A stretch of DNA of 64,000 nt, taken from Dendrobates tinctorius (Eukaryota). The DNA lies in the NCBI RefSeq assembly GCF_039654945.1, contig NW_027361819.1, positions 6,448,001-6,512,000 on the forward strand. Direction: 5' to 3'. The translations under genes and the position numbers were made by a program. Below are positions 1,496 through 55,000 of the stretch, in pieces (position 1 is the first letter of the stretch; each line of letters starts with the position of its first letter). A model generated the notes under the pieces. It was not told the DNA's origin. It made no database searches and saw only the letters and a list, made by a program, of their open reading frames with translations.

Positions 1496-1583
1496 CACGG
1501 ATTTTGACCTGCGGATTCTGCCAAGAGATGCAGATTCCGCGCAGAAAACTCCACACAGTAATCCGCAACGTGTGCACATCCCC
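1496..1583. mobile_element. Right terminus of a MITE (…AATCCGCAACGTGTGCACATCCCC-TAA) that encloses the 34-bp satellite
   Basis: It has the same CCGCA(A/G/C)CGTGTGCACA terminal motif as the complete MITEs at 7457-7834 and 36710-37031, and is followed by TAA. Confidence 0.7.
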
Positions 1584-1967
1584 TAAATGTCTGAGAATCT
1601 TGGTGGGAAATGTGGAATCCTCGGAGAATCCCTGGAAATCTGGCCCTGACCTCACCGTATAAGCAGTCCATGGCCGAGAACAGGTGCGAGCATCGGGGGC
1701 CCGGAACACAGCTGGATAGTGGGGGTCCCCCAGGGGTAGAGGGGGATCAGGTAGGGAACACGTCAGCCGTCTGCAGGGCTCTGCTGGAATTTGGCTGCAC
1801 AGCGTCGCTCCTCTGCGCAGATGTGAGCGAGGAATATGAGATCATAGTGAGATCCCATTACCCCCACACTACACCCCAGCTCTGCTACACCGCCGTGTGC
1901 ACTACAACAGATGCCAACCACAGGACAGCAACTTACGTGCGCGTACGACTATAAAAAGAAGTGCGGA

Positions 1968-2240
1968 TGTAGCAGAGCCGAGTGTGTCAGATATAGCAGA
2001 GCCAAGTGTGTCAGATATAGCAGAGCCAAGTGTGTCAGATATAGCAGAGCTGAGTGTGTCAGATAGCGGAGTCAAGTTTGTGAGATAGCAGAATCGAGTA
2101 TGTCAGATAAAGCAGAGCCAAGTGTGTCAGATATAGCAGAGCTAAGTGTGTCAGATATAGCAGAGCTGGGTGTGTCAGATATAGCAGAGCTGAGTGTGTC
2201 ACATGTGGCAGAGATGAATTTGTTAGATTAGGCAGAGCTA
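1968..2240. repeat. 24-bp minisatellite (GCAGAGCCAAGTGTGTCAGATATA)n
   Basis: The ORF 1897..2088 has an 8-aa periodicity (AEPSVSDI). There are ~11 copies, decaying rightwards. Confidence 0.9.
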
Positions 2241-2374
2241 AATTGTCCAGAAGTAGCTGAGATAATGTTTGCCAGATGTATTTGAGTTGAGTTTGTCAAA
2301 AGCGGCAAGGAAAGCGCCGTATAGATGAGTGTGTTTTCTCTGGGAGTTGTACAGTTATCTGAATGTAGACACAA

Positions 2375-3330
2375 ACACATGGGCCGTGCACACAGTGAAC
2401 AAGTCTGTATGACAATGTTCACACCACCAAAAGACTGAAACACAGAAAAACAAACGCATAAAAATACTCTGTTGTAAAAAAGTAACAGTAAACTGCAAGT
2501 GCTAGTAAAAAGATGATAACAAAACAGGGAATTTAGTTGTTACATTTTTGCAAAAAAAATGTATACTGAGCCGCTCTACCAACCGTGAAGGTATACCCAT
2601 CAGAGCAGTCCTAACCGATGTATTTAAAAACCTGACCATGTGTATAGTACCTGTATGAGCAGGATTCTGACAGGTAAGGACACGCTGTGGAAGGCGGCTT
2701 TTTGTGTGCATGGCCCATAAGGGAGGGGTGGAATCCTCCCCAATCTTGCAAAAACAAGAAACAAATTAGACATAAACCCATGGGCCATGCACACAGCGAA
2801 CAAGTCTGTATGACAGTGTTCACATCAAATTCCCTGTTTTGTTATCATCTTTTTACTAGCACTTGCAGTTTTCTGTTACTTTTTTACAACAGAGTATTTT
2901 TATACGTTTGTTTTTCTGTGTTTTTGTCTTTTGGTGGTGTGAGCTCTGTCACGTGCACGGCCCATGGGTTTGTGTCTATTGGTTTCTTGTTTTTGCAAGA
3001 TTGGGGAGGATTCCACCCCTCCCTTATGGGCCATGCACACAAAAAGCCGCCTTCCACAGCGTGTCCACATTGGACCTTACCTGTCAGAATCCTGCTCATA
3101 TAGGTACTATACACATGCTCAGGTTTTTAAATACATCGGTTAGGACTGCTCTGATGTGTGTATACCTTGACGTTTGGTAGAGCGGCTCAGTATACATTTT
3201 TTGCAAAAAACGTAACAACCAAATACCCTGTTTTGTTATCATCTTTTTACTAGCACTTGCAGTTTACTGTTACTTTTTTACAGCAGAGTATTTTTGCACG
3301 TTTGTTTTACTGTGTTTTTCTGTGTTTCAG
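2375..3330. repeat. ~400-bp unit present in direct and inverted orientation, forming a long imperfect palindrome
   Basis: CATGGGCC(G/A)TGCACACAG occurs at ~2377 and ~2779. The reverse-complement copy begins at ~2827. Arm 2434-2795 pairs with arm 2951-3330. Confidence 0.85.
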
Positions 3331-3949
3331 TTATCTAAGTGCGCCAACAATGGAGTTGTAAACAATGAAATGAAACATTCAGCTCTGCTGCATCAGTCGG
3401 TGCACTGTGCTGCATGGTTTGGAGCAGCAGAGCTGTGTGTGTCTCCGGCCATCTTACAATGTAGGGATGACTTACGATGATCCCCATTCTGCTTTCCTGA
3501 TTGCTGACTCCTGACCGAGCTGAGTGCCACCAGCAGGAGGAGGAGGATGTAGTGTCCGAGGCGCCCCGCAGCCTGCAACACAACAAGTCCTGGTCAGCAA
3601 GTACTATCCCTTTAAGATGAATTGTCCCCCACACACTCCATTAAGTCCTGCGGTGACCCCATTTTCATGCCAACCTCATCTGAACCCCCTGAGCCACATT
3701 CAGCCCCGGTGCCCCCCACAGACTACACTGCGCTCCCCCTTACCTCCATGTCTGCTGTGTCCTGTGTAGTGTGAGGCTGCTATTTAAGGTCTTGTATTTA
3801 TATGGTGCGTCTGGTCCTGGGCCCCCTCCTTCCACAGCCTCCCCTGCTCCAGGGATGTGAAGGGAGGACTGAAACAGGGGGGATGTGTAAATGGTGCGCA
3901 CAGGATGCGGGGTTGTGATGCCACCTTCCAGTCCTGTACATGTGCATCC

Positions 3950-5830
3950 TCAGCAGCACATGACAGGATGGTCCGAGGAAAGGTGAGGACCACAAAACAT
4001 GAAAAGAGGTGAAAAAAAAGAGAAAAATCCTTCCGGGACCAGAGGAGGCAACTGAGGACAAAGGTGAACGCCAAAGCAATACCAGAAATGGTCCAACACT
4101 CCGGAACACCAACTGTGGGCAGCACATGACAGGATGGTCCAAGGAAAGATGAGGACCACAAAACCTGAAAAGAGGTGAAAAATAAGAGAAAAATCCTTCC
4201 GGGACCAGAGGAGGCAACTGGGGACAAAGGTGAACGCCAAAGCAGTACCACAAATGGTCCAACACTCCGGAACACCAACTGTGGGCAGCACATGACAGGA
4301 TGGTCCGAGGAAAGGTGAGGACCACAAAACATGAAAAGAGGTGAAAAATAAGAGAAAAATCCTTCCGGGACCAGAGGAGGCAACTGGGGACAAAGGTGAA
4401 CGCCAAAGCAATACCACAAATGGTCCAACACTCCGGAACACCAACTGTGGGCAGCACATGACAGGATGGTCCGAGGAAAGGTGAGGACCACAAAACCTGA
4501 AAAGAGGTGAAAAATAAGAGAAAAATCCTTCCGGGACCAGAGGAGGCAACTGGGGACAAAGGTAAACGCCAAAGCAATACCACAAATGGTACAACACTCC
4601 GTAACACCAACTGTGGGCAGCACATGATAGGATGGTCCGAGGAAAGGTGAGGACCACAAAACTTGAAAAGTGGCAAAAATTTGAGAAAAAACCCTTTAGG
4701 ACCATAGGAGGCAACTGGGGACAAAGGAGAACTCCATAGCAATACCACAAATGGTCCAACACTCCGGACCACCAACCTTGGGCAACACATGACAGGATGT
4801 CTGGACTGATTGCGAGGAAAGGTGAGGACCACAAAACATGAAAAGAAGTGAAAAATAAGCGAAAAATCCCTCCGGGACCAGAGGAGGCAACTGGGGTCAA
4901 AGGAAAACTCTATAGCTATACCACAAATGGTCCAACACTTTGGATCACCAACCATGGAGCAACTCATAACAGGATGGTCCGGGCTGCAAACAAGAAAAGG
5001 TGGGGACCACAAAACATGAAAAGAGGCAAACACTAGAGAAATATCCCTCCGGGACCAAAGGAAACTGGAGACAAAGGTGCACTCTATAACAGTAACAAAA
5101 ATGGTCCAACACTCTGGACCACTAACCGTGAGCAGCACATGACAGGATGGTCTGGGTTTATTACCAAGGAAGGTGGGGATCACAAAACATTAAAAGAGGC
5201 AAAAATAAGTGAGAAATCCCTCCGGCGCTAGTGGAGGCAACTAGGGACAAAGGAAAACTCCTTAGCAATACCAAAAATGGTCCAATACTTTGGACCACCA
5301 ATAGTGGGTGGCACATGACAGGATGTTCCAGGGTGAGAGTGAGGAGAGGTGGGGACTGCAGAACTCGTAAAGAGGCGAAAAAAATAGAAAAATCCCACCA
5401 GGGCCAGAGGAGGTAACTGAGGACAAAGGAGAACTCCATAGCAAAACACGAAATGGTCCAACCGTCCGGACTACCAACCGTGGCGCAGTTGATATCAGGA
5501 TAGTCCAGTCTGATAGTGAGGAAAGGCGGGGACCACAAAACATTAAAAGAGGTGAAAAAATAGAAAAATCCCACTGGGACCAGAGGAGGCAACTGGGGAC
5601 AAAGGAGAACTCCATATCTATACCACAAATGGTCCAACACTTTAGATCACCAACCATGGAGCAACTCATAACAGGATGATCTAGGCAGATAGTGAGGAAA
5701 GGTGGGGACCACAAACCACGAAAAGAGAAGAAAAAAATAGAAAAATCACACCAGGGCTAGGAGGAGGCAACTGGGGACAAATGAGATATCTATAGGGTAC
5801 CCACAAATGGTCCAACACTTCAGACCTCTA
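3950..5830. repeat. ~166-bp tandem satellite, with ~178-bp diverged units on the right
   Basis: The AGCACA of AGCACATGA(C/T)AGG ends at 3960, 4126, 4292, 4458 and 4624 (period 166). Later units are longer and more diverged. Confidence 0.9.
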
Positions 5831-32400: not shown

Positions 32401-35091
32401 CCAGTGAACCCTCTGTGTCCAAAACATAGACCACTACCTAGGGGAATAGATTTGAGTCAGCGAGGTACAGAACAAAGGAACATTGCCAATGATGTTATGA
32501 AGGAGTAGAACTCTCAGATGAGATGGACGCCATGCCAGAGATGTGAATCCTGATCTCACCTTCTCTCCCTTCTGGCCCACCATGAAAGGTCTGTTCCAGA
32601 TCCAGATCCCCTTTGTAGTGCTGTCGATGCCACATTTCCATTCGAAACCTTGGAGGGGTTCATCATTTGCTCCAAGACTGAAGTCCTCGCCCTTCTCCTA
32701 CAAGAAGTTACAAAGGAGTCTGGTAACATCAAGCGGAGCTATAGGATCCCTCAGGTTAGAGGAGCAAATAAAGGGTCTTATCTCATTGGCGAGCCACACT
32801 GAAAATCCTCAACCGTCAGTCGCTGTATGAGAGCTACCGAGACCCCTATTCAGATCAAGGCCCTAGAATGAAGCTGACTGGTGTGTCACAGGTCGTGGGA
32901 GCCTCACAGAGAATTGAGCATCACTTGACATCCCCAGATACCCTCGGGCATCCAGTAATATCCATGGAAATCACCGTACAATGGCGCCAGGTTATCCCAG
33001 CACATCATATAAACATTTGTAGTGACTCGCGCACTATAAGTTTATGCCCCCCTTGGCCTCCGCTCACCTGACTCTCCAAGGCCCTCAAGACATAATTCAT
33101 CAGGAACGACTTCCCGCGCCGCTTTTCTCCGATGACGCAGAGCAGATAGACAGGATAAGTGGACAGATGGCTGTTCATGAAGCAGTTGTAGACCACCGAC
33201 TCATCCAGGTGTAAGCGGCCATTGCCATCCGTCCACACCAGCTGTAACGGGTAACCCTGCTCCGGAGGTTGCAGACATTCCTGTAGAATAACAGATGCTG
33301 GTAACGCCAAGATCTGATTTTTTCTGGATTGATTAGCCTGCTGGTCACATTGTTACCTGCTCTCTGGTTTTGTCCTGGATTCCCTTTTGGATCTTGTCGA
33401 TGAGGTTCATCAGACGATAGTCGGGTGCAATCTGATTTCGGGGACACTGTGTCCTGCACTCGGGGCAGAGGTAACCGGCTGGGTGTGGGGTGCTCCAGTG
33501 TGTGGTAATACAGTTTCGGCAGAAGGTGTGCCCGCAGGCGATGGACACCGGATTCTGCAGGTCATCAAGGCACACTGAGCAGGTGATGTCCTCTGCTAGG
33601 ACCTGGAAGCCAACGGCACCATCTGAAGGTAGCGGGGGGTCATTACTAAAGAAAACAGAGCACCAATTCAACTCGAGTCACTACAGGCAGTTGGCTACAC
33701 GGTTACGCTGGTGATTGAACGGGACAGGGTGGCTATGCCAGAGATCGAGTGGGGAAGGGGGCATCGCCAGCAATCGAGCCGGACAGGGCACCTACGCCAG
33801 CGATCGAGTCGAGCAGGGGGGGCTACGTCAGCAATCGAGCGGGACAGGGCAGCTATGCCAGCGATTTAGTGGCTTTTCACAGCGATGGAGCAGGACAGGG
33901 CAGCTATGCCAACGATCGAGTCGGGCAGGGGGGGCTACGTCAGCAATCGAGTGGGACAGGGCAGCTATGCCAGTGATTAAGTCAGGCAGGGGGCATCGCC
34001 AGCAGTCGAGCGGGACAGGGCAGCTATGCCAGTGATTAAGTCAGGCAGGGGGCATCGCCAGCAGTCGAGCGGGACAGGGCAGCTATGCCAGTGATTGAGT
34101 CGGGCAGGGGGCATCGCCAGCAATTGAGCGGTACAGGGCAGCTACGCCAGCGATCGAGTCGAGCAGGGGGGGCTATGTCAGCAATCGAGTGGGACAGGGC
34201 AGCTATGCCAGCGATTGAGTGGCTTTTCACAGCGATGGAGCAGGACAGGGCAGCTACGCCAACGATCGAGTCAAGCAGGGGGGCTACGTCAGCGATCGAG
34301 CGGGACAGGGCAGTTATGCCAGCGATCGAGCGGGACAGGGCAGTTATGCCAGCGATCGAGCGGGACAGGGCAGTTATGCCAGCGATCGAGCGGGACAGGG
34401 CAGTTATGCCAGCGATCGAGCGGGACAGGGCAGTTATGACCAGCGATCGAGCGGGACAGGGCAGTTATGCCAGCGATCGAGCGGGACAGGGCAGTTATGA
34501 CCAGCGATCGAGCGGGACAGGGCAGTTATGCCAGCGATCGAGCGGGACAGGGCAGCTATGCCAGTGATTGAGCGGGACAGGGCAGTTATGCCAGCGATCG
34601 AGCGGGACAGGGCAGTTATGCCAGCGATCGAGTGGGACAGGGCAGTTATGCCAGCGATCGAGTGGCTTTTCCCAGCGATGGAGTTGGACATGGCGGCTAT
34701 GCTGTCGATAGAGTGGGATAGTGGAACTATGCAGGGCATGAGCAGGCGGTGCAGCTATGCTGGCGGCAGCAAAAGTTAGTGCGGCTATGCTTGCGATGGA
34801 GCAGAAGAGTGCGTCTTCTCAGGCGGCAGGGCAGGGCGGCTATGCTGGCGTTGGAGCTGACGCGACTCTCCTACAACCCGGACTACATATTTCAGTGCTG
34901 TCGTCGGTGTACAGACTGTCACTGTGGCCCCCGGCCTCTCACCTCACAGTCTCGGCGCTCTCGCTGGGTCTGGCCGCTCGCTCTCGCCGTGGTCTCTTTC
35001 TCACCCTCTTCCTCTGGGGCTCAGTCTGTGGTTGCGCCGGCCTGAGTGAGGTTTGCGGCCTCTCTGCCGCCCTGTGCCTCCTGGCCTCCAT
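26426..35091 (-). CDS. RNF112-like: RNF112-like RING finger / GBP-atlastin-type GTPase, paralogue B (~616 aa, 13 coding exons)
   Basis: Exons: 35091-34943, 33645-33357, 33280-33068, 32697-32560, 32437-32333, 32241-32191, 30862-30818, 30676-30590, 30316-30193, 29832-29702, 28284-28231, 27056-26982, 26815-26426. All introns are GT-AG and the total of 1851 nt stays in frame. Motifs: C3HC4 RING CSVC…CGHTFCRNC…CPEC, G1 GEKRRGKS, G2 STTKGIW, G3 DTEG, G4 IRDW, FLLPHPG, and a hydrophobic C-terminus. The first coding exon is the least certain. Confidence 0.9.
28440..29617. repeat. 33-bp minisatellite (CCCCTCAGCCACACCCCTGCTGACGTAGCCCTG)n with a ~60-bp spacer repeated three times; intronic in gene B
   Basis: The 11-aa periodicity is GVAEGQGYVSR. 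The spacer CATGCTGGCACCGTTTGTTCCC… occurs at ~29117, 29314 and 29546. Confidence 0.9.
31249..31510 (-). mobile_element. Short 3' fragment of a second CR1 family, intronic in gene B
   Basis: CATAGTTATATAGACTGAAAAAAGAC…GGTCCATCAAG is a CR1-type 3' end. The minus strand reads RKGFFTVGAVRLW, like the CR1 ORF2 C-terminus (compare RKNFLTVRVINEWN in the full element). Confidence 0.65.
33712..34700. repeat. 30-bp minisatellite (CCAGCGATCGAGCGGGACAGGGCAGTTATG)n in the first coding intron of gene B
   Basis: The 10-aa periodicity is MPAIERDRAV. Confidence 0.9.
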
Positions 35092-35123
35092 GTTTGTTTG
35101 TCTGCCTCCAGTGACAGTCACCG

Positions 35124-35450
35124 CTCCTCCTCCTCCTCCTCCTCCTCCTTCTCCTTCTCCTTCTCCTCCTCCTCCTCCTCCTCTGTGCAGCTGTTCTTCC
35201 AGTTCCTCACTACACCCCACCTGCCTCTGATGCAGCAGAGCTGAGCTGCTCCTTTGTTTCAGTTGTGGAATCTGAACTGTTGTGAGCAGTCTGGAGACAA
35301 TAAGGAACATGAAATCCTCCCAAGATGTCCGGACGGTGGCGGGGCGGGAGCGCTGCGCCTTGGATGGCGCTCAGTGTGTATGGAAGCAATTAGTGACTGT
35401 AATGGGCCGGCGCCGCGTCTTCTGCGCATCGTGCCCGATCACGGAGTGCA
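35124..35450 (-). promoter_or_regulatory. Putative 5' UTR/promoter of gene B: (CCT)n microsatellite, GC boxes and a CpG-rich patch
   Basis: (CCT/CTT)n spans 35124-35182. GGCGGGGCGGG is at ~35338. A CpG cluster at 35330-35445 lies just upstream of the first coding exon. Confidence 0.5.
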
Positions 35451-36188
35451 AAGTCCTGTAACTTTCTCGTAGACTCTGGGGCGCTGTCATTATTGCATTT
35501 TCTCTTTTTTTTTTCTTAGTTTGTGACTTTTTTTTCGCCCGTTTTTCATTTGCGCCTTGTTCCTTGTTTTCGATGGACGCTGTTGGGTTTGGGATTTCCA
35601 GAAGTTCGCGGTTGTGAATGATAAAAAAAGTCAGAGAAGTTTTGCAGTTTGCGAATGTTGTGACATTGTGGAAGAAGGCGTCACATTACTGATTACGGAC
35701 AACGCGCACGGAACCTTCGCTTTTTTTTGTCACTTTGTCGTCTGCTGCTCACTGAGGAGTCTCTGCCGAATCTATCAAAATGGCGCAGGCGGCTCAATAT
35801 GGTGACAAGTAAAAAAAAAAAGTTCAAAAACCTCCTTAAGGCTTTGTTCACACGTTGCGTTTTTTTTCCGCCGTTTTACCAAATAAACCGCATCAGAAGC
35901 ACTTAAAAGCTTACCATTCGTTTTAATGAATTCCGCACTTTTTGTGCAGATGTATGTGTCTTTACCGCGAAAAAAAACGCTTTGCGGTAACAGGCTCATT
36001 CATTTGTCGGAAAATTCCGCATTTCTAGCTATTTTCTATGTGACTGGGGACGCGCAAAAAACGCACGTTTTCTGGGAAGGAGTCCAGTTTTCATGCAGAA
36101 ATTTTCTGCATACGCCGGCATTATTCTGTCTGTAAATATTTTACTGCTTTACACAACAAAAATCCTGTCCTTCAGGAAATCGCTCCGG

Positions 36189-41074: not shown

Positions 41075-44000
41075 TCACTCCGCTTTGGGCACCAGCTTTT
41101 GGGTGTCTTCAGGCGTTGAGCCATTGGTATCACCTTGGTCATCGGGCGTCTGATCCTTCTTCTTCTTCTCTATATGCCCAATAATCCCCCCCACACCTCC
41201 TCCAACTCCTGTCCCAATAGCCCCTCCGACGGACCCTCCGACTGCCCCGCCGATTATGATAGCCTCCGTAGCCAGGACCGTTCCAGCCACGGCTGCTCCC
41301 ACGATGCCTCCTGCCAGGGTGAGGATCCCTCCACCCACCGCACACCCGATCCCCACAGCGCACTTTGTGAAGCGCTTGGAGTATTCGGAGCAGAATTTCT
41401 CCACTTCTTGGTCCAGTAGAGCCTTCATCTCATAGGTCAGATTTATCCTCGCCGCGTCATTGCTGCCCCTCAGATTCTGCTCGTACTCCTGAAGGAGCCG
41501 TAAGGCCTCCTCGCTGACGACCTCCCTCATAGTAGAGGGCCTAACCTTCAACACCTTGATAGGAGAAGACGGGCTTGGAGCCTGAGGAGGACACGAGAAG
41601 ATACGTTACATTTCATGGTCTATGACTACAGCCTGGTATGGACAGATGGACGAGGCTGGCGATGATCTATAACCATGCCGCCATGGCCGATCGCTCCGGA
41701 TACAGAACGTCCCCACATGGGACGAGGGATCTTACCTTATTTGCAACAAAATCTTGGAATATTTTCACCGTGATCTTCAAGTTTTTGTGGTTTTCGAGGG
41801 CATAGAACATCTGGAGGAAGAGAACGAGGCGTTAATGTGATGACCGGAGACGAGGAGCCTCATCCCATCCTGTATGTAGGATACCGGGGTGAGAACTAAC
41901 GATGGAGGAGAAACGATACGGCCATGGGAACATGGAGGGGAATCATCCTGAGGGATTACATCCTATGTGTCCGACTGGATCTTATGTGTCCGACTGGATC
42001 TTATGTGTCCGACTGGATCTTATGTGTCCGACTGGATCTTATGTGTCCGACTGGATCTTATGTGTCCGACTGGATCTTATGTGTCCGACTGGATCTTATG
42101 TGTCCGACTGGATCTTATGTGTCCGACTGGATCTTATGTGTCCGACTGGATCTTATGTGTCCGACTGGATCTTATGTGTCCGACTGGATCTTATGTGTCC
42201 GACTGGATCTTATGTGTCCGACTGGATCTTATGTGTCCGACTGGATCTTATGTGTCCGACTGGATCTTATGTGTCCGACTGGATCTTATGTGTCCGACTG
42301 GATCTTATGTGTCCGACTGGATCTTATGTTTCTTGGAATGTTTCAGAACTATGTATCCTGAGTGTTTCCTGTATGTGAATGACATGGGACTGGACATCGG
42401 GGAGAGGCCGGGCCCCAGTCGGCCACGATTCATGCAGATTAGGGGTCACCGTGATTTTGTGGATTGTAGCGCGCTGCCTCTAGTGGACGACATAGGACAT
42501 GACACAATTACCTCTATAGGGGAAGCAAAGCTGAAGTTTTCTTGCTGCAAAGTACTGACGAAATCCTGAAAAATAAACAACACAGGAGAGAGAAGGGTTA
42601 ACAAAGAAAAAAAAGAAAAAGACATATATATAAAAAGTACATAGTGGCTGAGAAGGTGGACATAATGTCAGCTGAGCATCAGTAGATGCAGACATGGCCG
42701 GAATGGAACGGGAGAAAAAAACAGTTCAAGCGCAGTGAAATGGGGAGTCGGGGGGGATTCTGGTTTTTGGGGTTTTGTTTCTAGGCTTTCACTAATAATG
42801 TGAATTTTCTTCGTAGTCATTTTCAGTCCTTTATTGCCCGTGATAACCAGCTGTGTGCGGGCAGAAGAGGACGCGGTTACTTGGATTACAGGGGAGGATT
42901 TTTTTTTTATAATTTTGGGGGAGGACGGGAAGGCAAAAATGTGACCCTCAGCGGCATTAATTACGGGCACTCAGGGCGCCATCACTGAGTCAGGGGGCCC
43001 ATGCGTGCCTTGCCCGGGTGCCGGTAGCACACAATTTGACACTCTTCTTTTCCAATTTTTCTCCTTGCTGCTCGTTCTGCTCTCGGCATTAAAGCCTCCT
43101 CTTCAACCTTCAGTCCGGACACCCGTCGCTCATATTCTTCCTCTTTTTTCATCCACAAAAAACCGTACTGATGCCACGTCACGACCCCAATATAGCACTT
43201 GAGTCATTTAATGACCCTCTTAAAGGGATTACTTACAGAAAAGTCAGGGTTCCTCGCACCGTGCCATCGTTAGCTGATAAGAAGGAATTATTAACCCTTT
43301 TCTTGGTAATGGGTCTTATCAATTTACAAGAAATGATGAGCGAGGAGACTCTACACCGACAGGTCCCTAGCGCGGACCATAGCGCTACTGTAGCAGCGGA
43401 AAATGCCATATAACGCCCCGAGATAATCGTCAGAAGATCTGTGATAACATTTCATGTCCGACCTTCAGCATTCGGCCCAGCTGGCCGCACGTGATCCTCT
43501 CTCCATGGACATCGGTTTTACGGTGGAGCCAAACGTCTTCCATGACGCTGGAGATGTACGTGGTCAGGTGGCTCCTGAAGTCATCGTCCATGTCTGTGAA
43601 GAGAGGCAATAATCATCACACTGGAATATACAGGTATATTCTACCGGGTGGGAGCAGTCCTAGGGTCTCTTACCCTCCCGGCTTGCAGGTAATTTGGGGT
43701 GAGCAGTGTGTGGCGGGTGGAGGGGAAATGTAACACTGGATGGCGCCCATATCACGGTGGAGCAATGTTTCCATTGGTGGTGTCCCTCATCGCTCCGACT
43801 GATCGGTCTGTAGAGGATAGTCCCTCTAACTCGAGTCTTACCCGATAGCCGCCCTTCACTGGATCTCAGGAATGTTTTCCCCGGATGAGGCAGGAGGAAG
43901 CCGCTCACGGACGGACTGCGCAGAGTCTCCAGCACACGGCGGTATGTCGCGCTCTTCCGCAGCTTCTACAAAAACAGAGTGTAACTTTCCATCCTCAGTG

Positions 44001-47000
44001 TCAGGTTCGTACACCTCCTGGGATGGCCGATACCCACCCAAGATTTTATTCACGTAGCCATGTGTTGGAGACTTGCAGCTCCCCGAGTGTCACCAAAGTT
44101 TGGTGAAAAAACATCCAAATACAGACCGGCGCAGTTTGCAAAGGGCATCAGAAAAAAACCTCTTCTCAACAATTAGTGACCAATGACAACAAAAGACCTT
44201 TTGTAAATTGTGATAATCTGGAAGTCGGCACAAATTATGGCTCCGATGTGGTCACAGCCGGACAGTCCTAAATACAATAGGAGCTCTGTCATACCTCCGT
44301 CTCGTGCTCCAAGTAGGACTTTGCCGCTTCTCGACCACAGTCGTCGGGGTTATGCCAATCACGAACCAGAATATTCAGGTGCTAAAGTGTAGAAGACATC
44401 AAAGATGGAGAGATGCAACCACTGGGAGATGCAGGAAGTCAAAGGACGATGGGGACACTAAAAAGGCGGAGAAAGTATCTGCTCTGCTCCTAATCTTCAG
44501 GAAGGTGACCCCCACTGGTTTTCCATTGCTTATTACTGGAGCTCAGGTGGAGAGGACAAGCACTCAAGCTCACAATGGCTGACCGTAGTTGTGGTCCTTC
44601 ATCTACACATCACCAGAGCGGACATAGGAGATGCCATAAACTCAACCAGAGAAAAGAAGACAGCTACAGTAATGTGCCAAGAAGTAGTGGTCACGATTTT
44701 GGTAAAATAGCCTGAAGGTTGCTGGGAAGAAGCTGAAGACATTGACCAATGATGTCATCAAGATGCCAGAAATGAACCCTATCAAAAACTGCACTCTAGA
44801 GATCCTGCAAAACATTCCCTACAGGATTGGTAAGAATGTGTGGAGAGAGCGACGCCGAGAGGAGGTCACCTGTAGATACTGTAGACAGAAGGATTCCCCT
44901 GTGAGCTCCGACACGTGGAGATACATCTGAAAAGACACAAATACATCTCGATCGATCCAGTCCATCTCGTAGAAATGAAACTCAAGGTTACATGGGCAGA
45001 AGCCTCTTCATTCCACTGATACATTGTAGTGACAATGTAACGATGGTCCGTGATACATTCAAGGACTGACATCGAGGAGAACAACAACAGATTTTTGTAG
45101 AGATGTCCTCGACTTCCGTACCTCCAGATAATCCAGCTCTGTTGTTTTCAAGCTTGCATTAATGTTGAAGATCTGAGGACACAAACAAACGTCACATGAG
45201 AAGATGTTCATGAAGAGGATGGACGCCCCATCACCAAGACGTTACATGAAATTACATCAACCCCCACTAGAGATCGCGTGAGTGACACAAGTATAGTAAT
45301 CCTGCCATTGACAAGGGCGGTGGGCTACATCAATATCTAGGGGGTCTATACAAACTGCAGAGTGCAGCCACTCATTTATCTTTTATGCGGTTTGATTAGT
45401 GTGCCAAAACAAAAATATATATTGTGGTCATACATGTGTATTACACTCTCCAAAATCTCTTGAGGGAGTAAAGAGGTGTGTGGGCATGGGTATTCAGGGC
45501 TCCGCGAAGACCTCACATACCAGGTAGGAGCTGAGGAGCATGGACAAGGCGGAGAGCTTCACACAGGTCTCCCTATCACCTTCGATGTCCAGTGAACCCT
45601 CTGTGTCCAGGACAAACACGGCCATCTGTACAGAGAAGAAAGAAGGGTCACATCATAACCAAGGACCATGACGTCAATCGTGAAATCCAGTCTGTGCTTC
45701 TGTAAATGACATGTGATCGAGTAGCTGCAATCAGATCTGACATTCATCCATGATTTACAGAGACCGGAGATCGAAGCGATAATCGTTACATTGATCTTAC
45801 CGGCGGCTCACGATAAAGAGTGCGAGGACAGACCTGATGAGAGACATACATTGTGCCCTTTACCTTTTCTCCGTTCCTCTCCAGGATAAAGGGTCTACTC
45901 CACAACCATATCCCTTTGGTGAGACTGTCTGTCCCGGATCGCCACTCAAAACCGTGGAGGGGCTCGTCCTGTTCCCCTAGGCGGATCGGCTGACCCTTCT
46001 CCTATACAGAAAAAATAAATTTGTGAAATCATTCTGAAACTATTTTCTCAATACCAAGGATGGATCCCCATCAATAACATATCTCCAAATGCAAGTCCCC
46101 CTCCCAGGGTAAGCATGTGCCGAACTCCTCTATAAAAACAAGTAACTTTGGGGTGGAGCAGATACAAGCATGAGGCCCCCCTAACCCTTGACTTGAGGGG
46201 TGATGATATGATCCCATTTAGTCCCTGTGACATTGGATGTTGCCCTTTATCCTGCAGGTTATGACTCCTCACCAGGCTGTAAAGTGCTCTCAGAATATAG
46301 TTCATCAGGCTGGACTTTCCTCTTCTCTTCTCTCCAATCACACAGATAAGGCACAGGGGGTAATCGGAGATCTTACGGTCCAAAAAGCAGCCATCAAGAA
46401 CGGATTCATCCAGCCCCATTTTGTTGCAAGCATTGGTATAGACCAGCTGGACGGCACGTGGAGGAGCCTAGGAGGACATTAGTCATAGTCAATATTTACG
46501 CAGATCATTGCATCTCATATCTATGAAGTAGACAGATAGGAATGTCTAATGGTCTGCCATCTGTGATTACCCACAGGCTTCTCCTCCCCCATATCAAATA
46601 AACTTCCATGTATAACATTGTCACCGGTGTATTAACTGAAGACTGGCATGGCCCAAGTACCCATGGCGTTCCCTACTATTCTCTAACAACCCAAATGATA
46701 CAACAAAGGTATGGGGCCATGATAAAGGTTTGTGTCATACATCTTTATGAATGTGTGGAATTTGCACCAGATAAAACTGTTTCTCTGTATTTGGCATTAA
46801 ATTATTATCACTTTAAAGGCTCTAAAAACCACTTTTACCTACTAGTTTGGACTGTTATTTTTGACAGCTAAACCATTGGTATGAATCTTCAAGTATTAAC
46901 CCATTCATTGTCTGAACAGTGGGCGTGGTTGAAATACCCATGGCGGTCCCTACAGTTTTTCAATAGCCAACATAATACTCTTATCTGTGTTATGATAAGT

Positions 47001-47696
47001 TAACATAAGTCTGTGCTGTAAATCTCAGCTAAGCGTAGACTTTGTACAAGCTATAACCATTGTTACTCAGCGTTCATTATTAAGTTATAGAAGGGCACAC
47101 ATGCTACAGAACGTGCAACTTTCTTACTTTCACCTACCAGTCTGGACTGCTCTTCTTTGACAACCAGCTGAACCTTTGACACCAGTTGCTGCAGGCGGTA
47201 GGCAGGTATGAGCTGATCTCTCGGACAGACTTTCCTGCATTCTGGACAGCGATACCCAAAGGGTTGTGGGGTGGACCAGTAGGAAGAGATACAGGGTTTA
47301 CAAAAATTGTGCCCGCAGGTGATAGATACCGGGTCACGGAGCTCATGGAGACAAATGGAGCATGTGATATCGTCTTTTAGTTTGGAGAAATGTGCAGACC
47401 CTTCATTTGGCATGGCTGCCCTAATTCACAGAGACATCCGGCAGAAAGAAAAGGAAAGTTACAAGTCTCATCATGATAAGTTATGTGAAGTCAGGGAGTA
47501 AAGTAAAAGCAAAGTAGACGAAAACAGCAAAGCTGTGACGGAGCATGGATCAGACGATGCTGGGGATAAGTACAAACATGGACGACAATATGATAACGAG
47601 TCACATGACCTGCGCCTGGAATAAAAGGAGCTAAAGACTATAAACACCACAGGAAAAGTAAGGGATGACTTACGGCTTAGAGCGGCTGCTTCCCAT
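41075..47696 (-). CDS. RNF112-like: RNF112-like RING finger / GBP-atlastin-type GTPase, paralogue A (~609 aa, 13 coding exons)
   Basis: Coding exons: 47696-47674, 47420-47138, 46467-46273, 46001-45864, 45625-45521, 45172-45122, 44926-44870, 44381-44295, 43965-43842, 43593-43463, 42565-42512, 41810-41736, 41581-41075. All introns are GT-AG, the total of 1830 nt stays in frame, and phases are identical to gene B. Motifs: RING CSIC…CGHNFCKPC…CPEC, GEKRRGKS, SLTKGIW, DTEG, VRDW, FLLPHPG, and the Gly-rich tail AVGGGILTLAGGIVGAAVAG typical of RNF112. Confidence 0.93.
41963..42328. repeat. Perfect 19-bp minisatellite (CTTATGTGTCCGACTGGAT)x~19, intronic in gene A
   Basis: The copies are invariant and give a 19-aa periodicity in all three frames. 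Confidence 0.97.
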
Positions 47697-48565
47697 GTGG
47701 CGAGTGCAGGGCGCCCTGATATCTATGGAGCCTGCGGGACAGAGGTCGATGACTGACATAGGAGGAGAAAAAGCAAACATATCAGACATGGAAACACCCT
47801 GACGGAGTTAACCCCTGAGCTACTGACACCGCGCAGAAAAGGCGAAGTACAGGAAGATCAACAGCCCTGACTGCACAGTGTATGCGCTCCATCACCTAGA
47901 TTATGTCCATACACTGTATGCCCAGTTATAGCCACACATCGTACGTGTTCCATAGCGTCACAAAAGTTACAAACATGACCATAAATGTATAAAGATACAT
48001 GCATTATTATTACAGCAAAACATACAATACACAGGATAACAGAGGGGACATCAAGAAAACTCCCACAGATGACAGAAAGGATGTAAATCCGGCACCAATG
48101 ACAACACACACAGCGGATGCGGGGATGCGAAGGTGGATGCCAAGGAACAGCAGAAAGGGCTATGAAAAATCATCTCACAAGAAGATCGACAGCAGTGTAA
48201 AGTAACCATGATGCATAGCGGGTATCACCTATAAGCACCCGACAAGCGTGGCTTCTTCCAAAGGGGCAAAATGCATGTCAGGTGCAGACAGGTGATACCT
48301 GAGTCATTCCTTTTGGCTGTTTGCACATGTTGTGTTTTTGCTCTCTATTACTAGCACCAGGTCTTGATGTCAGCTCTGTGTTTGGACAATTCACAGTTGT
48401 CATCAACCCCAAGACCCATTACTCCGATTGTCACTGTACCAAGGCAGGAGGAGTCGGGCGAAGTGCCAGAATTGACGAATTGCACATGACGCTCCAATTC
48501 TGTGTAGGCTGCGGACTGCTCTAATTAGGCTGGGAAGGGGCCATTATCCATGGACTATCCCAGAC

Positions 48566-51219
48566 TGTGTATCCGTACACCCCCGTGTCTCCATCGTATC
48601 CGTACACCCCCCCCGTGTCTCCATCGTATCCGTACAACCCCCCCGTGTCCCCATCGTATCCCAACACCCCCGTGTCCCCATCGTATCCGTACACCCCCCC
48701 GTGTCCCCATCGTATCCGTACACCCCCCCGTGCCTCCATCGTATCCGTACACCCCCCCGTGTCTCCATCGTATCCGTACACCCCCCCCGTGTCCCCATCG
48801 TATCCGTACACCCCCCCGTGTCCCCATCGTATCCGTACACCCCCCGTGTCTCCATCGTATCCGTACACCCCCCGTGTCTCCATCGTATCCGTACACCCCC
48901 CCCGTGTCCCCATCGTATCCGTACACCCCCCCCGTGTCCCCATCGTATCCGTACACCCCCCGTGTCTCCATCGTATCCGTACACCCCCCGTGTCTCCATC
49001 GTATCCGTACACCCCCCCCCGTGTCCCCATCGTATCCGTACACCCCCCGTGTCTCCATCGTATCCGTACACCCCCCGTGTCTCCATCGTATCCGTACACC
49101 CCCCCGTGTCCCCATCGTATCCGTACACCCCCCCGTGTCTCCATCGTATCCGTACACCCCCCCCGTGTCCCCATCGTATCCGTACACCCCCCCCCCGTGT
49201 CCCCATCGTATCCGTACACCCCCCGTGTCCCCATCGTATCCGTACACCCCCCGTGTCTCCATCGTATCCGTACATCCCCCCCGTGTCCCCATCGTATCCG
49301 TACACCCCCCGTGTCCCCATCGTATCCGTACACCCCCCGTGTCCCCATCGTATCCGTACACCCCCCGTGTCCCCATCGTATCCGTACACCCCCCGTGTCC
49401 CCATCGTATCCGTACACCCCCCGTGTCTCCATCGTATCCGTACACCCCCCGTGTCCCCATCGTATCCGTACACCCCCCGTGTCCCCATCGTATCCGTACA
49501 CCCCCCGTGTCTCCATCGTATCCGTACATCCCCCCCGTGTCCCCATCGTATCCGTACACCCCCCGTGTCCCCATCGTATCCGTACACCCCCCGTGTCCCC
49601 ATCGTATCCGTACACCCCCCGTGTCCCCATCGTATCCGTACACCCCCCGTGTCCCCATCGTATCCGTACACCCCCCGTGTCTCCATCGTATCCGTACACC
49701 CCCCGTGTCCCCATCGTATCCGTACACCCCCCGTGTCCCCATCGTATCCGTACAACCCCCCCCCCGTGTCTCCATCGTATCCGTACACCCCCCCCCCCGT
49801 GTCTCCATCGTATCCGTACACCCCCCCCCCCGTGTCCCCATCGTATCCGTACACCCCCCGTGTCTCCATCGTATCCGTACACCCCCCCGTGTCTCCATCG
49901 TATCCGTACACCCCCCCCGTGTCCCCATCGTATCCGTACACCCCCCCGTGTCTCCATCGTATCCGTACACCCCCCCCGTGTCCCCATCGTATCCGTACAC
50001 CCCCCCCCCCCGTGTCCCCATCGTATCCGTACACCCCCCGTGTCCCCATCGTATCCGTACACCCCCCGTGTCTCCATCGTATCCGTACATCCCCGTGTCC
50101 CCATCGTATCCGTACACCCCCCCCCCGTGTCTCCATCGTATCCGTACACCCCCCCCCCCGTGTCTCCATCGTATCCGTACACCCCCCCCCCGTGTCCCCA
50201 TCGTATCCGTACATCCCCCGTGTCTCCATCGTATCCGTACCCCCCCCCGTGTCTCCATCGTATCCGTACACCCCCCCCCCCCGTGTCTCCATCGTATCCG
50301 TACACCCCCCCCGTGTCTCCATCGTATCCGTACACCCCCCCCCCCCCGTGTCCCCATCGTATCCGTACATCCCCGTGTCCCCATCGTATCCGTACACCCC
50401 CCCCCCCGTGTCCCCATCGTATCCGTACATCCCCCGTGTCTCCATCGTATCCGTACACCCCCCCGTGTCTCCATCGTATCCGTACACCCCCCCCGCGTGT
50501 CTCCATCGTATCCGTACACCCCCCCCCCGTGTCCCCATCGTATCCGTACATCCCCGAGTCCCCATCGTATCCGTACACCCCCCCCCCGTGTCCCCATCGT
50601 ATCCGTACACCCCCCCCCCCCCCGTGTCCCCATCGTATCCGTACATCCCCCGTGTCCCCATCGTATCCGTACATCCCCCGTGTCTCCATCGTATCCGTAC
50701 ATCCCCCGTGTCTCCATCGTATCCGTACACCCCCCCGTGTCTCCATCGTATCCGTACACCCCCCCCCCCGTGTCCCCATCGTATCCGTACACCCCCCCCC
50801 CCCCGTGTCCCCATCGTATCCGTACATCCCCCGTGTCTCCATCGTATCCGTACACCCCCCCGTGTCCCCATCGTATCCGTACACCCCCCCCCCCGTGTCC
50901 CCATCGTATCCGTACACCCCCCCCCCCCCCGTGTCCCCATCGTATCCGTACATCCCCCGTGTCTCCATCGTATCCGTACACCCCCCCGTGTCCCCATCGT
51001 ATCCGTACACCCCCCCGTGTCTCCATCGTATCCGTACACCCCCCCGTGTCTCCATCGTATCCGTACACCCCCCCCGTGTCTCCATCGTATCCGTACACCC
51101 CCCGTGTCCCCATCGTATCCGTACACCCCCCACCGTGTCCCCGTCGTATCCGTACACCCCCCACCGTGTCCCCGTCGTATCCGTACACCCCCGTGTCCCC
51201 GTCGTATCCGTACACCCCC
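48566..51219. repeat. C-rich ~28-35-bp minisatellite (CCATCGTATCCGTACA-Cn-GTGTCY)n in the 5' intron of gene A
   Basis: It has a constant core with variable poly-C. There are no stops in any of the six frames, which explains the huge spurious ORFs. Confidence 0.95.
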
Positions 51220-51781
51220 GGTCAGTGCTCCGCAGCCCCCCGTTCCCCCCCCCGGTCAGTGCTCCGCAGCCCCCCGGTCAGTGCTCCGCAGCCCCCCGTT
51301 CCCCCCCCCGGTCAGTGCTCCGCAGCCCCCCGGTCAGTGCTCCGCAGCCCCCCGGTCCCCCGCCCGGTCAGTGCTCCGCAGCCCCCCGGTCAGTGCTCCG
51401 CAGCCCCCCGGTCCCCCGCCCGGTCAGTGCTCCGCAGCCCCCCGGTCAGTGCTCCGCAGCCCCCCGTTCCCCCCCCCCCGGTCAGTGCTCCGCAGCCCCC
51501 CGTTCCCCCCCCCGGTCAGTGCTCCGCAGCCCCCCGGTCAGTGCTCCGCAGCCCCCCGTTCCCCCCCCCCGGTCAGTGCTCCGCAGCCCCCCGGTCAGTG
51601 CTCCGCAGCCCCCCGTTCCCCCCCCCGGTCAGTGCTCCGCAGCCCCCCGGTCAGTGCTCCGCAGCCCCCCGTTCCCCCCCCCGGTCAGTGCTCCGCAGCC
51701 CCCCGGTCCCCCCCCCGGTCAGTGCTCCGCAGCCCCCCGTTCCCCCCCCCGGTCAGTGCTCCGCAGCCCCCCGTTCCCCCC
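51219..51781. repeat. C-rich ~23/35-bp minisatellite (GGTCAGTGCTCCGCAGCCCCCC[GTT-Cn])n
   Basis: It is directly visible and abuts the putative exon-1 splice donor. Confidence 0.93.
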
Positions 51782-51791
51782 GTGTCTGTAC

Positions 51792-51835
51792 CTCTCCTCT
51801 CCTCCCTTCTCTTCTCTTTCTCCTCAGTTTGCAGG
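51792..51835 (-). other. Putative non-coding exon 1 of gene A
   Basis: A purine-rich segment ends in the donor GAG|GTACAG at 51792/51791, immediately downstream of the promoter motifs. It could splice to the acceptor cccgcag|G at 47731. The TSS is approximate. Confidence 0.55.
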
Positions 51836-51920
51836 AAGCCGGAACAGAAAGTGAAAGTGCTGGCGCCGCCCCCCGCGCTGTGATTGGCGGAGACTTGTGC
51901 AGGAGGCGGAGCTTTCCCTG
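51836..51920 (-). promoter_or_regulatory. Gene A promoter: ISRE/IRF-E, GC box, CCAAT box, NF-kB-like site
   Basis: GAAAGTGAAAGT at 51847-51858; CCGCCC at 51866-51871; ATTGG (CCAAT on the minus strand) at 51883-51887; GGGAAAGCTCC (minus strand) at 51908-51918. Confidence 0.7.
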
Positions 51921-52083
51921 TGTCTGGTGACTGATACATTTGCATCCCGCAGCCGCTGTCTGATTAACCCTTCGCTCTCCGGTGTCAGCCTCCTCCGCCC
52001 TCACTGCGGCCTCTCCGGGTGATCAGCTCTGGTTTCTCCAGGAGATTTTAGATTTTTTATTGCTGATTTTACCTTTAAATACT

Positions 52084-55000
52084 GGAGGAGAGCGGTGCGG
52101 CCCCTGAGTGAGGAGAGCAGTGTGAGGAGAGTACTGCGGCCCCTGAGTGAGGAGAGCAGTGTGAGGAGAGTACTGCGGCCCCTGTGTGAGGAGAGCAGTG
52201 TGAGGAGAGTACTGCGGCCCCTGTGTGAGGAGAGCAGTGTGAGGAGAGTACTGCGGCCCCTGTGTGAGGAGAGCAGTGTGAGGAGAGTACTGCGGCCCCC
52301 GTGTGAGGAGAGCAGTGTGAGGAGAGTACTGCGGCCCCCGTGTGAGGAGAGCAGTGTGAGGAGAGCGGTGCGGCCCCCGTGTGAGGAGAGTACTGCGGCC
52401 CCCGTGTGAGGAGAGCAGTGTGAGGAGAGCAGTGTGAGGAGAGCAGTGTGAGGAGAGTACTGCGGCCCCTGTGTGAGGAGAGCAGTGTGAGGAGAGTACT
52501 GCGGCCCCTGTGTGAGGAGAGCAGTGTGAGGAGAGCGGTGCGGCCCCCGTGTGAGGAGAGCAGTGTGAGGAGAGCGGTGCGGCCCCCGTGTGAGGAGAGC
52601 AGTGTAAGGAGAGCAGTGCGGCCCCTGTGTGAGGTGAGCAGTGTGAGGAGAGCGGTGGGGCCCCCGTGTGGGGAGAGCAGTGTGAGGAGAGCAGTGTGGG
52701 AAGAGCGGTGCGGCCCCTGTGTGAGGAGAGCAGTGTGAGGAGAGTACTGCGGCCCCCGTGTGAGGAGAGCAGTGTGAGGAGAGTACTGCGGCCCCCGTGT
52801 GAGGAGAGCAGTGTGAGGAGAGTACTGCGGCCCCCGTGTGAGGAGAGCAGTGTGAGGAGAGTACTGTGGCCCCCGTGTGAGGAGAGCAGTGTGAGGAGAG
52901 TACTGTGGCCCCAGTGTGAGGAGAGCAGTGTGAGGAGAGCGGTGCGGCCCCTGTGTGAGGAGAGTACTGCAGCCCCCGTGTGAGGAGAGCAGCGTGAGGA
53001 GAGTACTGCGGCCCCAGTGTGAGGAGAGCGGTGCGGCCCCCGTGTGAGGAGAGCGGTGTGAGGAGAGCGGTGCGGCCCCCGTGTGAGGAGAGCGGTGCGG
53101 CCCCCGTGTGGGGAGAGCAGTGTGAGGAGAGCAGTGTGAGGAGAGCGGTGCGGCCCCCGTGTGAGGAGAGCAGTGTGGGGAGAGCGGTGCGGCCCCCGTG
53201 TGGGGAGAGCAGTGTGGGGAGAGCGGTGCGGCCCCCGTGTGAGGAGAGCAGTGTGGGGAGAGCGGTGCGGCCCCCTTGTGAGGAGAGCAGTGTGGGGAGA
53301 GCGGTGCGGCCCCCGTGTGAGGAGAGCAGTGTGGGGAGAGCGGTGCGGCCCCCGTGTGAGGAGAGCAGTGTGGGGAGAGCGGTGCGGCCCCCGTGTGAGG
53401 AGAGCAGTGTGGGGAGAGCGGTGCGGCCCCCGTGTGGGGAGAGCGGTGCGGCCCCCGTGTGGGGAGAGCAGTGTGGCCCCCGTGTGGGGAGAGCAGTGTG
53501 AGGAGAGCGGTGGGGCCCCCGTGTGGGGAGAGCAGTGTGAGGAGAGCGGTGGGGCCCCCGTGTGGGGAGAGCAGTGTGAGTAGAGCGGTGCGGCCCCCGT
53601 GTGGGGAGAGCAGTGTGAGGAGAGCGGTGCGGCCCCCGTGTGAGGAGAGCAGTGTGAGGAGAGCAGTGTGAGGAGAGAGGTGGGGCCCCCGTGTGGGGAG
53701 AGCAGTGTGAGTAGAGCGGTGCGGCCCCCGTGTGGGGAGAGCAGTGTGAGGAGAGCGGTGCGGCCCCCGTGTGAGGAGAGCAGTGTGAGGAGAGCGGTGC
53801 GGCCCCCGTGTGAGGAGAGCAGTGTGAGGAGAGCGGTGCGGCCCCCGTGTGAGGAGAGCAGTGTGAGGAGAGCGGTGCGGCCCCCGTGTGAGGAGAGCAG
53901 TGTGGGGAGAGCAGTGTGAGGAGAGCGGTGCGGCCCCCGTGTGAGGAGAGCAGTGCGGCCCCCGTGTGAGGGGAGCAGTGTGAGGAGAGCGGTGTGAGGA
54001 GAGCGGTGCGGCCCCCGTGTGAGGAGAGCAGTGCGGCCCCCGTGTGAGGGGAGCAGTGTGAGGAGAGCGGTGTGAGGAGAGCGGTGCGGCCCCTGTGTGA
54101 GGAGAGCAGTGTGAGGAGAGCGGTGCGGCCCCTGTGTGAGGAGAGCAGTGTGGGGAGAGCGGTGGGGCCCCCGTGTGGGGAGAGCAGTGTGAGGAGAGCG
54201 GTGCGGCCCCTGTGTGAGGAGAGCAGTGCGAGGAGAGCGGTGCGGCCCCCGTGTGAGGAGAGCGGTGCGGCCCCCGTGTGAGGAGAGCGGTGCGGCCCCC
54301 GTGTGAGGAGAGCGGTGCGGCCCCCGTGTGAGGAGAGCGGTGCGGCCCCCGTATGAGGAGAGCAGTGCGGCCCCTGTGTGGGGAGAGCAGTGTGAGGAGA
54401 GCGGTGGGGCCCCCGTGTGGGGAGAGCAGTGTGAGGAGAGCAGTGCGGCCCCCGTGTGGGGAGAGCAGTGTGAGGAGAGCAGTGTGAGGATAGCGGTGGG
54501 GCCCCCGTGTGGGGAGAGCAGTGTGAGGAGAGCAGTGCGGCCCCTGTGTGGGGAGAGCCGTGTGAGAAGAGCGGTGTGGCCCCCGTGTGAGGAGAGCGGT
54601 GAGAGGAGAGCGGTGCGGCCCCCGTGTGAGGAGAGCAGTGCGGCCCCCGTGTGAGGAGAGCAGTGTGAGGAGAGCGGTGCGGCCCCCGTGTGACGAGAGC
54701 AGTGTGAGGAGAGCGGTGCGGCCCCGTGTGAGGAGAGCAGTGTGAGGAGAGCGGTGCGGCCCCTGTGTGAGGAGAGCAATGTGGCCCCCGTGTGAGGAGA
54801 GCAGTGGGAGGAGAGCGGTGCGGCCCCTGTGTGAGGAGAGCGGTGTGAGGAGAGCGGTGCGGCCCCTGTGTGAGGAGAGCGGTGCGGCCCCTGTGTGAGG
54901 AGAGCGGTGCGGCCCCTGTGTGAGGAGAGCGGTGCGGCCCCTGTGTGAGGAGAGCAGTGTGGGGAGAGCTCTGTGAGGAGAGCAGTGCGGCCCCTGTGTG

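Follow-up and report, generated by a model that had tools for sequence, protein, structure and literature searches.

The window analysed here, a 64,000-nucleotide stretch of Dendrobates tinctorius DNA free of N, carries on its minus strand a gene, called gene A below, that NCBI names RNF112-like. Its exons encode a C3HC4 RING finger, which lies in exon 3 (47138-47420, minus strand), and a GBP-type G domain (Pfam zf-C3HC4_4, E 2.4e-12, and GBP, 3.8e-6, respectively, when single exons are searched). The product of gene A matches exactly the NCBI protein XP_073403624.1, ‘RING finger protein 112-like isoform X2’ (P0170), a protein of 609 residues with the N-terminus MGSSRSKPAAMPNEG, for which both domains are precomputed on the full-length sequence, the domain combination of the RNF112 family. 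In addition to the RING finger and the GBP/dynamin-like GTPase, the product has a C-terminal hydrophobic segment. Its start codon lies in exon 2, a micro-exon of 79 nt (47674-47752, minus strand) in which the ATG at 47696-47694 opens the peptide MGSSRSKP. The relatives of this protein in other frogs have the N-termini MGNSTNK, MGNTNKK and MGNKNTK, and because they begin MGN..K we regard the myristoylation-type start as a feature of the family. The window also holds a second gene, paralogue B (26.4-35.1 kb), which has ~50% identity to gene A and the same exon plan, and whose first coding exon differs from that of gene A. The 5′ region of paralogue B (34943-35500) is CpG-rich and has a purine-rich run just upstream of the ATG at 35093.

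Upstream of the coding part of gene A lie several satellite arrays. A 28-bp array (48569-51219) precedes a C-rich 22/34/56-bp array (51215-51781), and a G-rich 39/25-bp array begins at 52085 and fills the rest of the window, to 64000. In the Tandem Repeats Finder result, 51782-52084 alone is free of repeats between the two satellites, an island of 303 bp, ordinary in complexity, with a GC content of 0.54 and a CpG observed/expected ratio of 0.64, which is read below on the minus strand, in the sense of gene A. A blastn search of the island against the window found no second copy, returning the island itself and short low-complexity matches; one match (35136-35168) was considered as a copy and rejected, as it corresponds to the purine/pyrimidine run near paralogue B. 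The preliminary description of this DNA had called the island the sole unique sequence amid the satellites, and both searches agree. An Rfam scan of the whole window returned zero RNA families.

The island as the first exon of gene A

The connection between the island and gene A was followed in Logan RNA contigs from four runs, aligned to 51760-52130. Contigs from runs X5, X6 and X7 (study P2) and from run X15 (study P4) share a join from 51792 to 47752 that obeys the GT..AG rule on the minus strand; they leave the island exactly at 51792, and in four of four runs the next 22 to 80 letters correspond to window positions 47723-47752. Because the contigs skip from 51792 to 47752 with GT..AG borders, some 4 kb of satellite must be removed as intron 1 (47753-51791, minus strand; GT at 51791-51790, AG at 47754-47753), which consists mostly of the 22/34/56-bp and 28-bp arrays. 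The minus-strand donor that follows 51792 (GAG/GTACAG) is weak by consensus, yet it is used in RNA. The NCBI model of isoform X1 agrees with this exon, its reading frame beginning inside the island. The island thus supplies the first exon of gene A.

A splice donor pointing into gene A had been predicted in the preliminary description as one end of a join from 51792 to 47731. The donor end holds, in four runs from two studies as well as in NCBI isoform X1; the 47731 end does not, and is replaced in the RNA contigs by 47752. We also rejected 47731 as an acceptor by comparison with Phyllobates terribilis, in which its AG reads GG, while the acceptor CAG at 47755-47753 is kept in three of three dendrobatoids (alignment A1). 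The same alignment contains a block of ~45 nt (near 47800-47850 on the minus strand; roughly columns 210-250 of A1), situated 60-110 nt before the exon-2 acceptor, in which D. tinctorius is near-identical to P. terribilis and A. baeobatrachus. Its conservation exceeds that of the coding micro-exon, and it may act as an intronic element in splicing or as a second, proximal promoter. The satellite directly past the exon-1 donor (48569-51781) belongs to a family common to several frogs. We compared this stretch with 1077-3891 of the Rhinoderma locus (L006) and 2319-4401 of the Anomaloglossus locus (L002), and in gene sense the 28-bp unit of D. tinctorius proves related to the 36-bp units of both: local alignment of the units scored 24 for D. 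tinctorius vs Rhinoderma (shuffle maximum 17) and 51 for Rhinoderma vs Anomaloglossus (shuffle maximum 21). No satellite related to the 39-bp array upstream of the island was found in the Rhinoderma/Anomaloglossus comparison.

Isoform X1 (XP_073403623.1, P0267; 679 residues; gene range of 10871 bases, 51945..41075) exceeds isoform X2 by 70 N-terminal residues. Residues 1-51 come from the island, read on its minus strand from the ATG at 51945-51943 down to 51792, and the remaining residues of the extension come from the 5′ part of exon 2 (47697-47752). A search among 5.8 billion proteins returned zero relatives of the 70-residue extension, and since it is without relatives we read it as probably a 5′ UTR with an upstream ATG, or an over-extended model, rather than a conserved isoform. 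The upstream ATG at 51945, if used, would make the myristoylation glycine of MGSSRSK internal.

Motifs of the island and their conservation

The preliminary description had listed an ISRE, a GC box, a CCAAT box, a kB-like site and ETS-like cores in the island, and each can be located. The ISRE (IRF-E) lies at 51847-51858 on the minus strand, reading GAAAGTGAAAGT on the plus strand and ACTTTCACTTTC in gene sense, and GAAAGTGAAAGT agrees with the ISRE consensus GAAANNGAAA(C/G)(T/C). The gene-sense centre of the element is TCACTTT, with its A at 51852, which by its letters would match the initiator consensus as well. A CCAAT box lies at 51883-51887 (minus strand), GGGCGG boxes at 51866-51871 and 51995-52000 (minus strand), the kB-like GGAGCTTTCC at 51908-51917 and an AGGAAG ETS core at 51833-51838, the last within a plus-strand stretch of ETS cores with the look of an ETS-IRF composite (51833-51850). 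Within this stretch GGAACAGAAA (51841-51850) abuts the ISRE and fits the ETS-IRF composite form GGAANNGAAA, and an ETS block, TTCCGGCTTCCTGCAAAC, stands just downstream of the ISRE in gene sense. From the CCAAT box to the donor there is no TATA box. The ISRE core is absent from paralogue B, so that between the two paralogues A alone carries the IRF element.

Several further matches were considered and set aside. A second strict ISRE match (47448-47459) coincides with the polypyrimidine tract of the exon-3 acceptor, seen from the opposite strand, and the P. terribilis orthologue lacks it. An ‘octamer’, ATTTGCAT (51938-51945), is the reverse strand of the ATG CAA ATG that opens the X1 frame and is not conserved. 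A plus-strand polypyrimidine tract with CAG that resembles an acceptor (51793-51826) arises from reading the purine-rich 3′ part of exon 1 in reverse, and the RNA contigs show no plus-strand splice use at 51793-51826.

Conservation was examined in RNF112-like loci, orthologous or closely related, of seven other frogs, each taken with 10 kb of upstream flank. The 11-mer CTTTCACTTTC, the conserved part of the ISRE, occurs in gene sense upstream of the MG... micro-exon in three of the seven species: 9 kb upstream in Rhinoderma darwinii, 6.5 kb upstream in Mixophyes fleayi, and 0.3 kb upstream in Pyxicephalus adspersus with a duplicate at 1.9 kb. Antisense copies of CTTTCACTTTC are absent from the upstream flanks of all seven frogs. 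In all three species a CCAAT box precedes the 11-mer by 29-30 nt (25 nt in D. tinctorius), and a G/GTRAG donor follows 40-68 nt downstream (54 nt in D. tinctorius). In alignment A3 (five sequences, four species) the invariant columns are CCAAT and CTTTCACTTTC..TTC. The putative promoter core with homology to other frogs spans 51827-51912 (minus strand) by blastn: 51912-51827 aligns to Rhinoderma L006 959-1047 with 77% identity over 90 nt (E 3e-10), the homology stopping about 25 nt upstream of the CCAAT box, and 51857-51808 aligns to the Mixophyes locus L007 (E 3e-7). The Pyxicephalus duplicate reflects a tandem duplication of the whole unit of promoter, exon 1, intron 1 and micro-exon acceptor, 1.6 kb apart, whose two copies (L005 7900-8400 and 9480-10024) are near-identical with both ISREs intact.

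The other flanks gave a different picture. In the two nearest relatives compared, 10 kb of upstream flank yielded neither an island homologue nor an ISRE core: the flank of P. terribilis is a 30-bp satellite up to the edge of the locus, and that of A. baeobatrachus contains a transposon end and a 36-bp satellite; in both the module may lie further out. Likewise the 10-kb flanks of Hyperolius and the bullfrog hold no CCAAT-ISRE module, which may lie further upstream. The architecture of the gene is nevertheless shared by the bullfrog, in whose RNA contigs the micro-exon is joined to a short non-coding exon 1 located beyond the 10-kb flank.

These comparisons bear directly on whether the ISRE is a chance spacer match without function. 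It is a single 12-mer picked by eye in a 64-kb window, and the degenerate pattern GAAANNGAAAST gives two matches in the 64 kb against a shuffle mean of 0.14, a count that 2 of 100 shuffles also reach; ISRE cores as such are rare in the window, at 5 per 64 kb. Against chance stands the identical 11-mer on the same strand, in the same position and with the same neighbours in three other frog families: across 2000 shuffles of the seven flanks the mean was 0.013 species with the 11-mer and the maximum was one, where three were observed. Conservation already contradicts a chance origin, to which we give next to no credence. The preliminary description had suspected selection from the persistence of the island amid satellite. 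When orthologous promoters were checked, the ISRE was found with the same neighbours in Rhinoderma, Mixophyes and Pyxicephalus, and the order, spacing and orientation of ISRE and CCAAT recur upstream of the orthologous micro-exon in these three frogs, which upholds that suspicion. As far as sequence comparison can tell, selection acts on both the ISRE and the CCAAT box, and the pair is kept at fixed spacing just before the exon-1 donor in four frog families.

Conservation does not extend to every motif. The kB-like GGAGCTTTCC departs from GGGRNNYYCC at position 3 and aligns to unrelated bases in Rhinoderma, so the island has no conserved kB site such as an NF-kB-responsive promoter would have. 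The GGGCGG at 51866-51871 is found in D. tinctorius only, the other aligned species having an unrelated spacer there, and the island likewise has no conserved GC box of the kind expected of an Sp1 promoter. The layout typical of a TATA-less interferon-stimulated gene promoter, as the preliminary description had put it, is therefore sustained for the conserved CCAAT box and ISRE without TATA, and not for the GC box and the kB-like site.

The factor that acts on the element could also be of another kind. With the same promoter and the same exon, the element may work as an ETS-IRF composite, bound by a PU.1-type factor with IRF8 or IRF4, giving constitutive myeloid or lymphoid expression instead of induction by ISGF3. 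The half-site of the classical ISGF3 consensus is GAAACT, and the 3′ half-site of the island is GAAAGT; GGAACAGAAA, as noted, fits the composite form and abuts the ISRE, and the ETS-rich TTCCGGCTTCCTGCAAAC is near-identical in Rhinoderma, where the 32-nt block of ISRE plus TTCCGGCTTCCTGCAAAC differs from that of D. tinctorius by one base. The deeper comparisons favour the IRF part over the ETS part, which is only partly kept in Mixophyes and is not kept in Pyxicephalus, where a third GAAA repeat replaces it, while the tandem GAAA repeats are invariant. As a replacement for interferon induction we consider the composite unlikely. The two modes are compatible, and a constitutive mode in immune cells, through a PU.1-type factor and IRF8, is live as a rival or as a second mode because GGAACAGAAA fits the composite form.

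Transcript forms and the join at 52018

Assembled contigs bound a transcript start but cannot show one, and the contigs used here are unstranded; the forms of exon 1 described below are to be read accordingly. The short form (51792-51845, minus strand; 54 nt, depth 17.8) comes from run X15, whose contig has its tip at 51845, 2 nt downstream of the ISRE, and has no continuation. Such an end would be expected if transcription began at 51845 or slightly upstream of it. The long form (51792-52018, minus strand) comes from X5, X6 and X7, and since a single contig spans 51792-52018 in these runs, the ISRE, the CCAAT box and the X1 ATG all lie inside RNA there. The idea in the preliminary description that the island is DNA directly upstream of the donor hence suits the short exon of X15, whereas in X5-X7 the island is transcribed throughout. 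Sampled words of the island are present at 76-96% in four P2 runs; runs of three other studies hold 0-4% of the island words and 82-87% of those of the 5′ coding region of gene A, shares that are consistent with two forms of exon 1. The simplest reading is that a short exon 1 begins at the ISRE region and that a longer form exists in the P2 samples, where transcription comes from upstream or from the other strand.

Two side observations come from the word counts over 47063-47731. The organism-A runs hold 82-87% of the words of this region, a share high enough to imply that many contigs retain the 253-nt intron 2. The organism-B runs hold 42% of its sampled words, roughly the share that lies wholly within the two exons, which suggests that organism B is a very close relative with near-identical exons.

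The long form raises the question of whether the island is a promoter at all, or a 5′ UTR exon only, with transcription starting in the 39-bp satellite or beyond the window and the motifs conserved for another reason. The X5-X7 contigs do cover 51792-52018 and then pass into satellite or outside sequence, and the NCBI X1 ATG at 51945 lies upstream of the motifs. We nevertheless find this account improbable. The X15 exon halts at 51845, at a depth of 17.8, without continuation; the fixed-spacing CCAAT-ISRE pair of three frogs, 40-68 nt before the donor, is arranged as in a promoter and not as in a UTR; homology ends about 25 nt upstream of the CCAAT box; the join at 52018 is non-canonical on the strand of the gene; and the N-terminal extension of X1 is without a relative.

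At position 52018 the assembly graph branches. One path is colinear and continues through 52019-52084 into the 39-bp satellite, and the other leads, in X5, X6 and X7, to a 30-mer from outside the window. The foreign partner (the 30-mer, and a 23-mer, ACCGGCTCTTCAGGTTACAGGGG) is absent from the window and from L003, which covers 10 kb upstream of the X1 start. The branch point is followed by GT at 52019-52020, a canonical donor on the plus strand only; on the strand of the gene the join would end in AC. These features raise the possibility of a bidirectional promoter, in which a plus-strand transcript with its donor at 52019 is spliced to an exon beyond 64000. The dinucleotides at the join, GT on the plus strand and ..AC on the minus strand, would be accounted for by such a transcript, as would a partner sequence that is found in three runs and missing from the window and L003, and k-mers of the 39/25-bp satellite that are present in the RNA contigs of the same three P2 runs and absent in X15. 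The contigs are unstranded, however, and the three runs belong to a single study; the contig is continuous from 51792 to 52018, so that both transcripts would need to overlap. A further join to the same foreign sequence, seen in one of these runs (X7) at 52124-52128, has an AGGA microhomology and fits no splice rule; it looks like a collapse of the array by the assembler or template switching, and as it appears artefactual the join at 52018 could be so too. The latter may therefore reflect a divergent transcript across the satellite, or an artefact of assembly or reverse transcription. A bidirectional promoter, which would be compatible with our preferred reading of the island as a promoter of gene A, is in our judgement somewhat unlikely.

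A candidate interferon-regulated promoter in a frog RNF112-like family

Our preferred reading, to which we assign a probability of roughly 0.6, is that the island is a conserved TATA-less core promoter with a short non-coding first exon, whose transcription is raised by IRF-family factors. Its order in gene sense would be a CCAAT box, presumably bound by NF-Y, a spacer of 25 nt, ACTTTCACTTTC, ETS cores and, after about 54 nt, the GT donor at 51791. Tandem GAAAGT repeats are the hexamer arrangement classically associated with responses to virus and interferon. Here they would be bound, at or just upstream of the start site, by IRF-family factors (ISGF3, IRF1, IRF3/7, or IRF8 with an ETS partner), so that antiviral or interferon signalling would raise transcription. 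Transcription would begin at the edge of the ISRE, with a putative start near 51846-51860. Splicing across 4 kb of satellite links exon 1 to 47752 in exon 2, where the MGSSRSK start codon lies. In some samples transcription from further upstream would cover the island and yield the long exon 1 with the in-frame ATG at 51945. Because three distantly related frogs have the ISRE at the equivalent position, gene A is probably immune-regulated, and if its transcription is raised by IRF factors in antiviral signalling it would be an interferon-stimulated gene.

A TATA-less promoter with an ISRE is a well-known kind, with examples in the ISRE of IFIT2/ISG54 (GGGAAAGTGAAACT), the AAGTGA repeats of IFN-beta PRDI and the KCS-ISRE promoter of PKR. 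Like these, the island has tandem GAAA half-sites at 2-nt spacing close to the putative transcript start, and a CCAAT box and ETS sites without TATA, and the product of gene A belongs to the GTPase/RING class common among interferon-induced effectors. Unlike them, it has GAAAGT and not GAAACT as the 3′ half-site; its ISRE apparently coincides with, or lies a few nucleotides from, the beginning of exon 1 in the short form, and falls within exon 1 in the long form; and it is embedded in kilobases of satellite.

Gene A shares with the interferon-inducible GTPase families (GBPs, IRGs, Mx and the GTPase-linked RING/TRIM effectors) a GBP-type G domain, a promoter with an ISRE, duplication in tandem and lipid or membrane anchoring; in contrast to these families, a RING E3 is fused to its GTPase, and it is through its promoter that we would place it among them. 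Mammalian RNF112 (ZNF179/neurolastin) is a brain-specific RING GTPase of the dynamin superfamily (PMC12012479). The frog protein resembles it in the RING finger, the GBP/atlastin-like GTPase and the C-terminal hydrophobic region; the frog gene differs in belonging to a multi-copy family of tandem paralogues and in having a micro-exon with an MG..S/K myristoylation-type start and an ISRE/CCAAT promoter. The literature searched contains no report of interferon control of RNF112, and no paper tying frog RNF112-like genes to interferon, nor any bearing on the frog paralogues, was found there.

A wider reading, which we put forward tentatively and at rather less than even odds, is that the frog RNF112-like ‘A’ genes form an unrecognised interferon-stimulated family of membrane-anchored, dynamin-like RING E3 ligases. 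The CCAAT-ISRE promoter would then predate the hyloid/myobatrachoid/ranoid split and, in D. tinctorius, have survived as the 300-bp island within more than 15 kb of satellite. The choice of start would decide between a short, myristoylated protein and an N-terminally extended, non-myristoylated one, and a divergent transcript may fire as well.

For annotation, the locus indicates that NCBI isoform X1 is likely an over-extended model, whose 70-residue extension would mask the myristoylation signal. For genome biology, it shows a regulatory core of 90 bp and an exon of 54 nt that persist, and are spliced correctly, amid kilobases of satellite. The interferon-stimulated genes of amphibians are poorly catalogued, at a time when frogs are under viral (ranavirus) and fungal epidemics. 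An element fixed in position across frog superfamilies provides a concrete candidate for that catalogue, a lipid-anchored fusion of a RING E3 with a dynamin/GBP-like GTPase whose relative in mammals is known solely as a gene specific to the brain. If the ISRE reading is true, the implication for frog RNF112-like genes would reach the level of the family, and it is testable.
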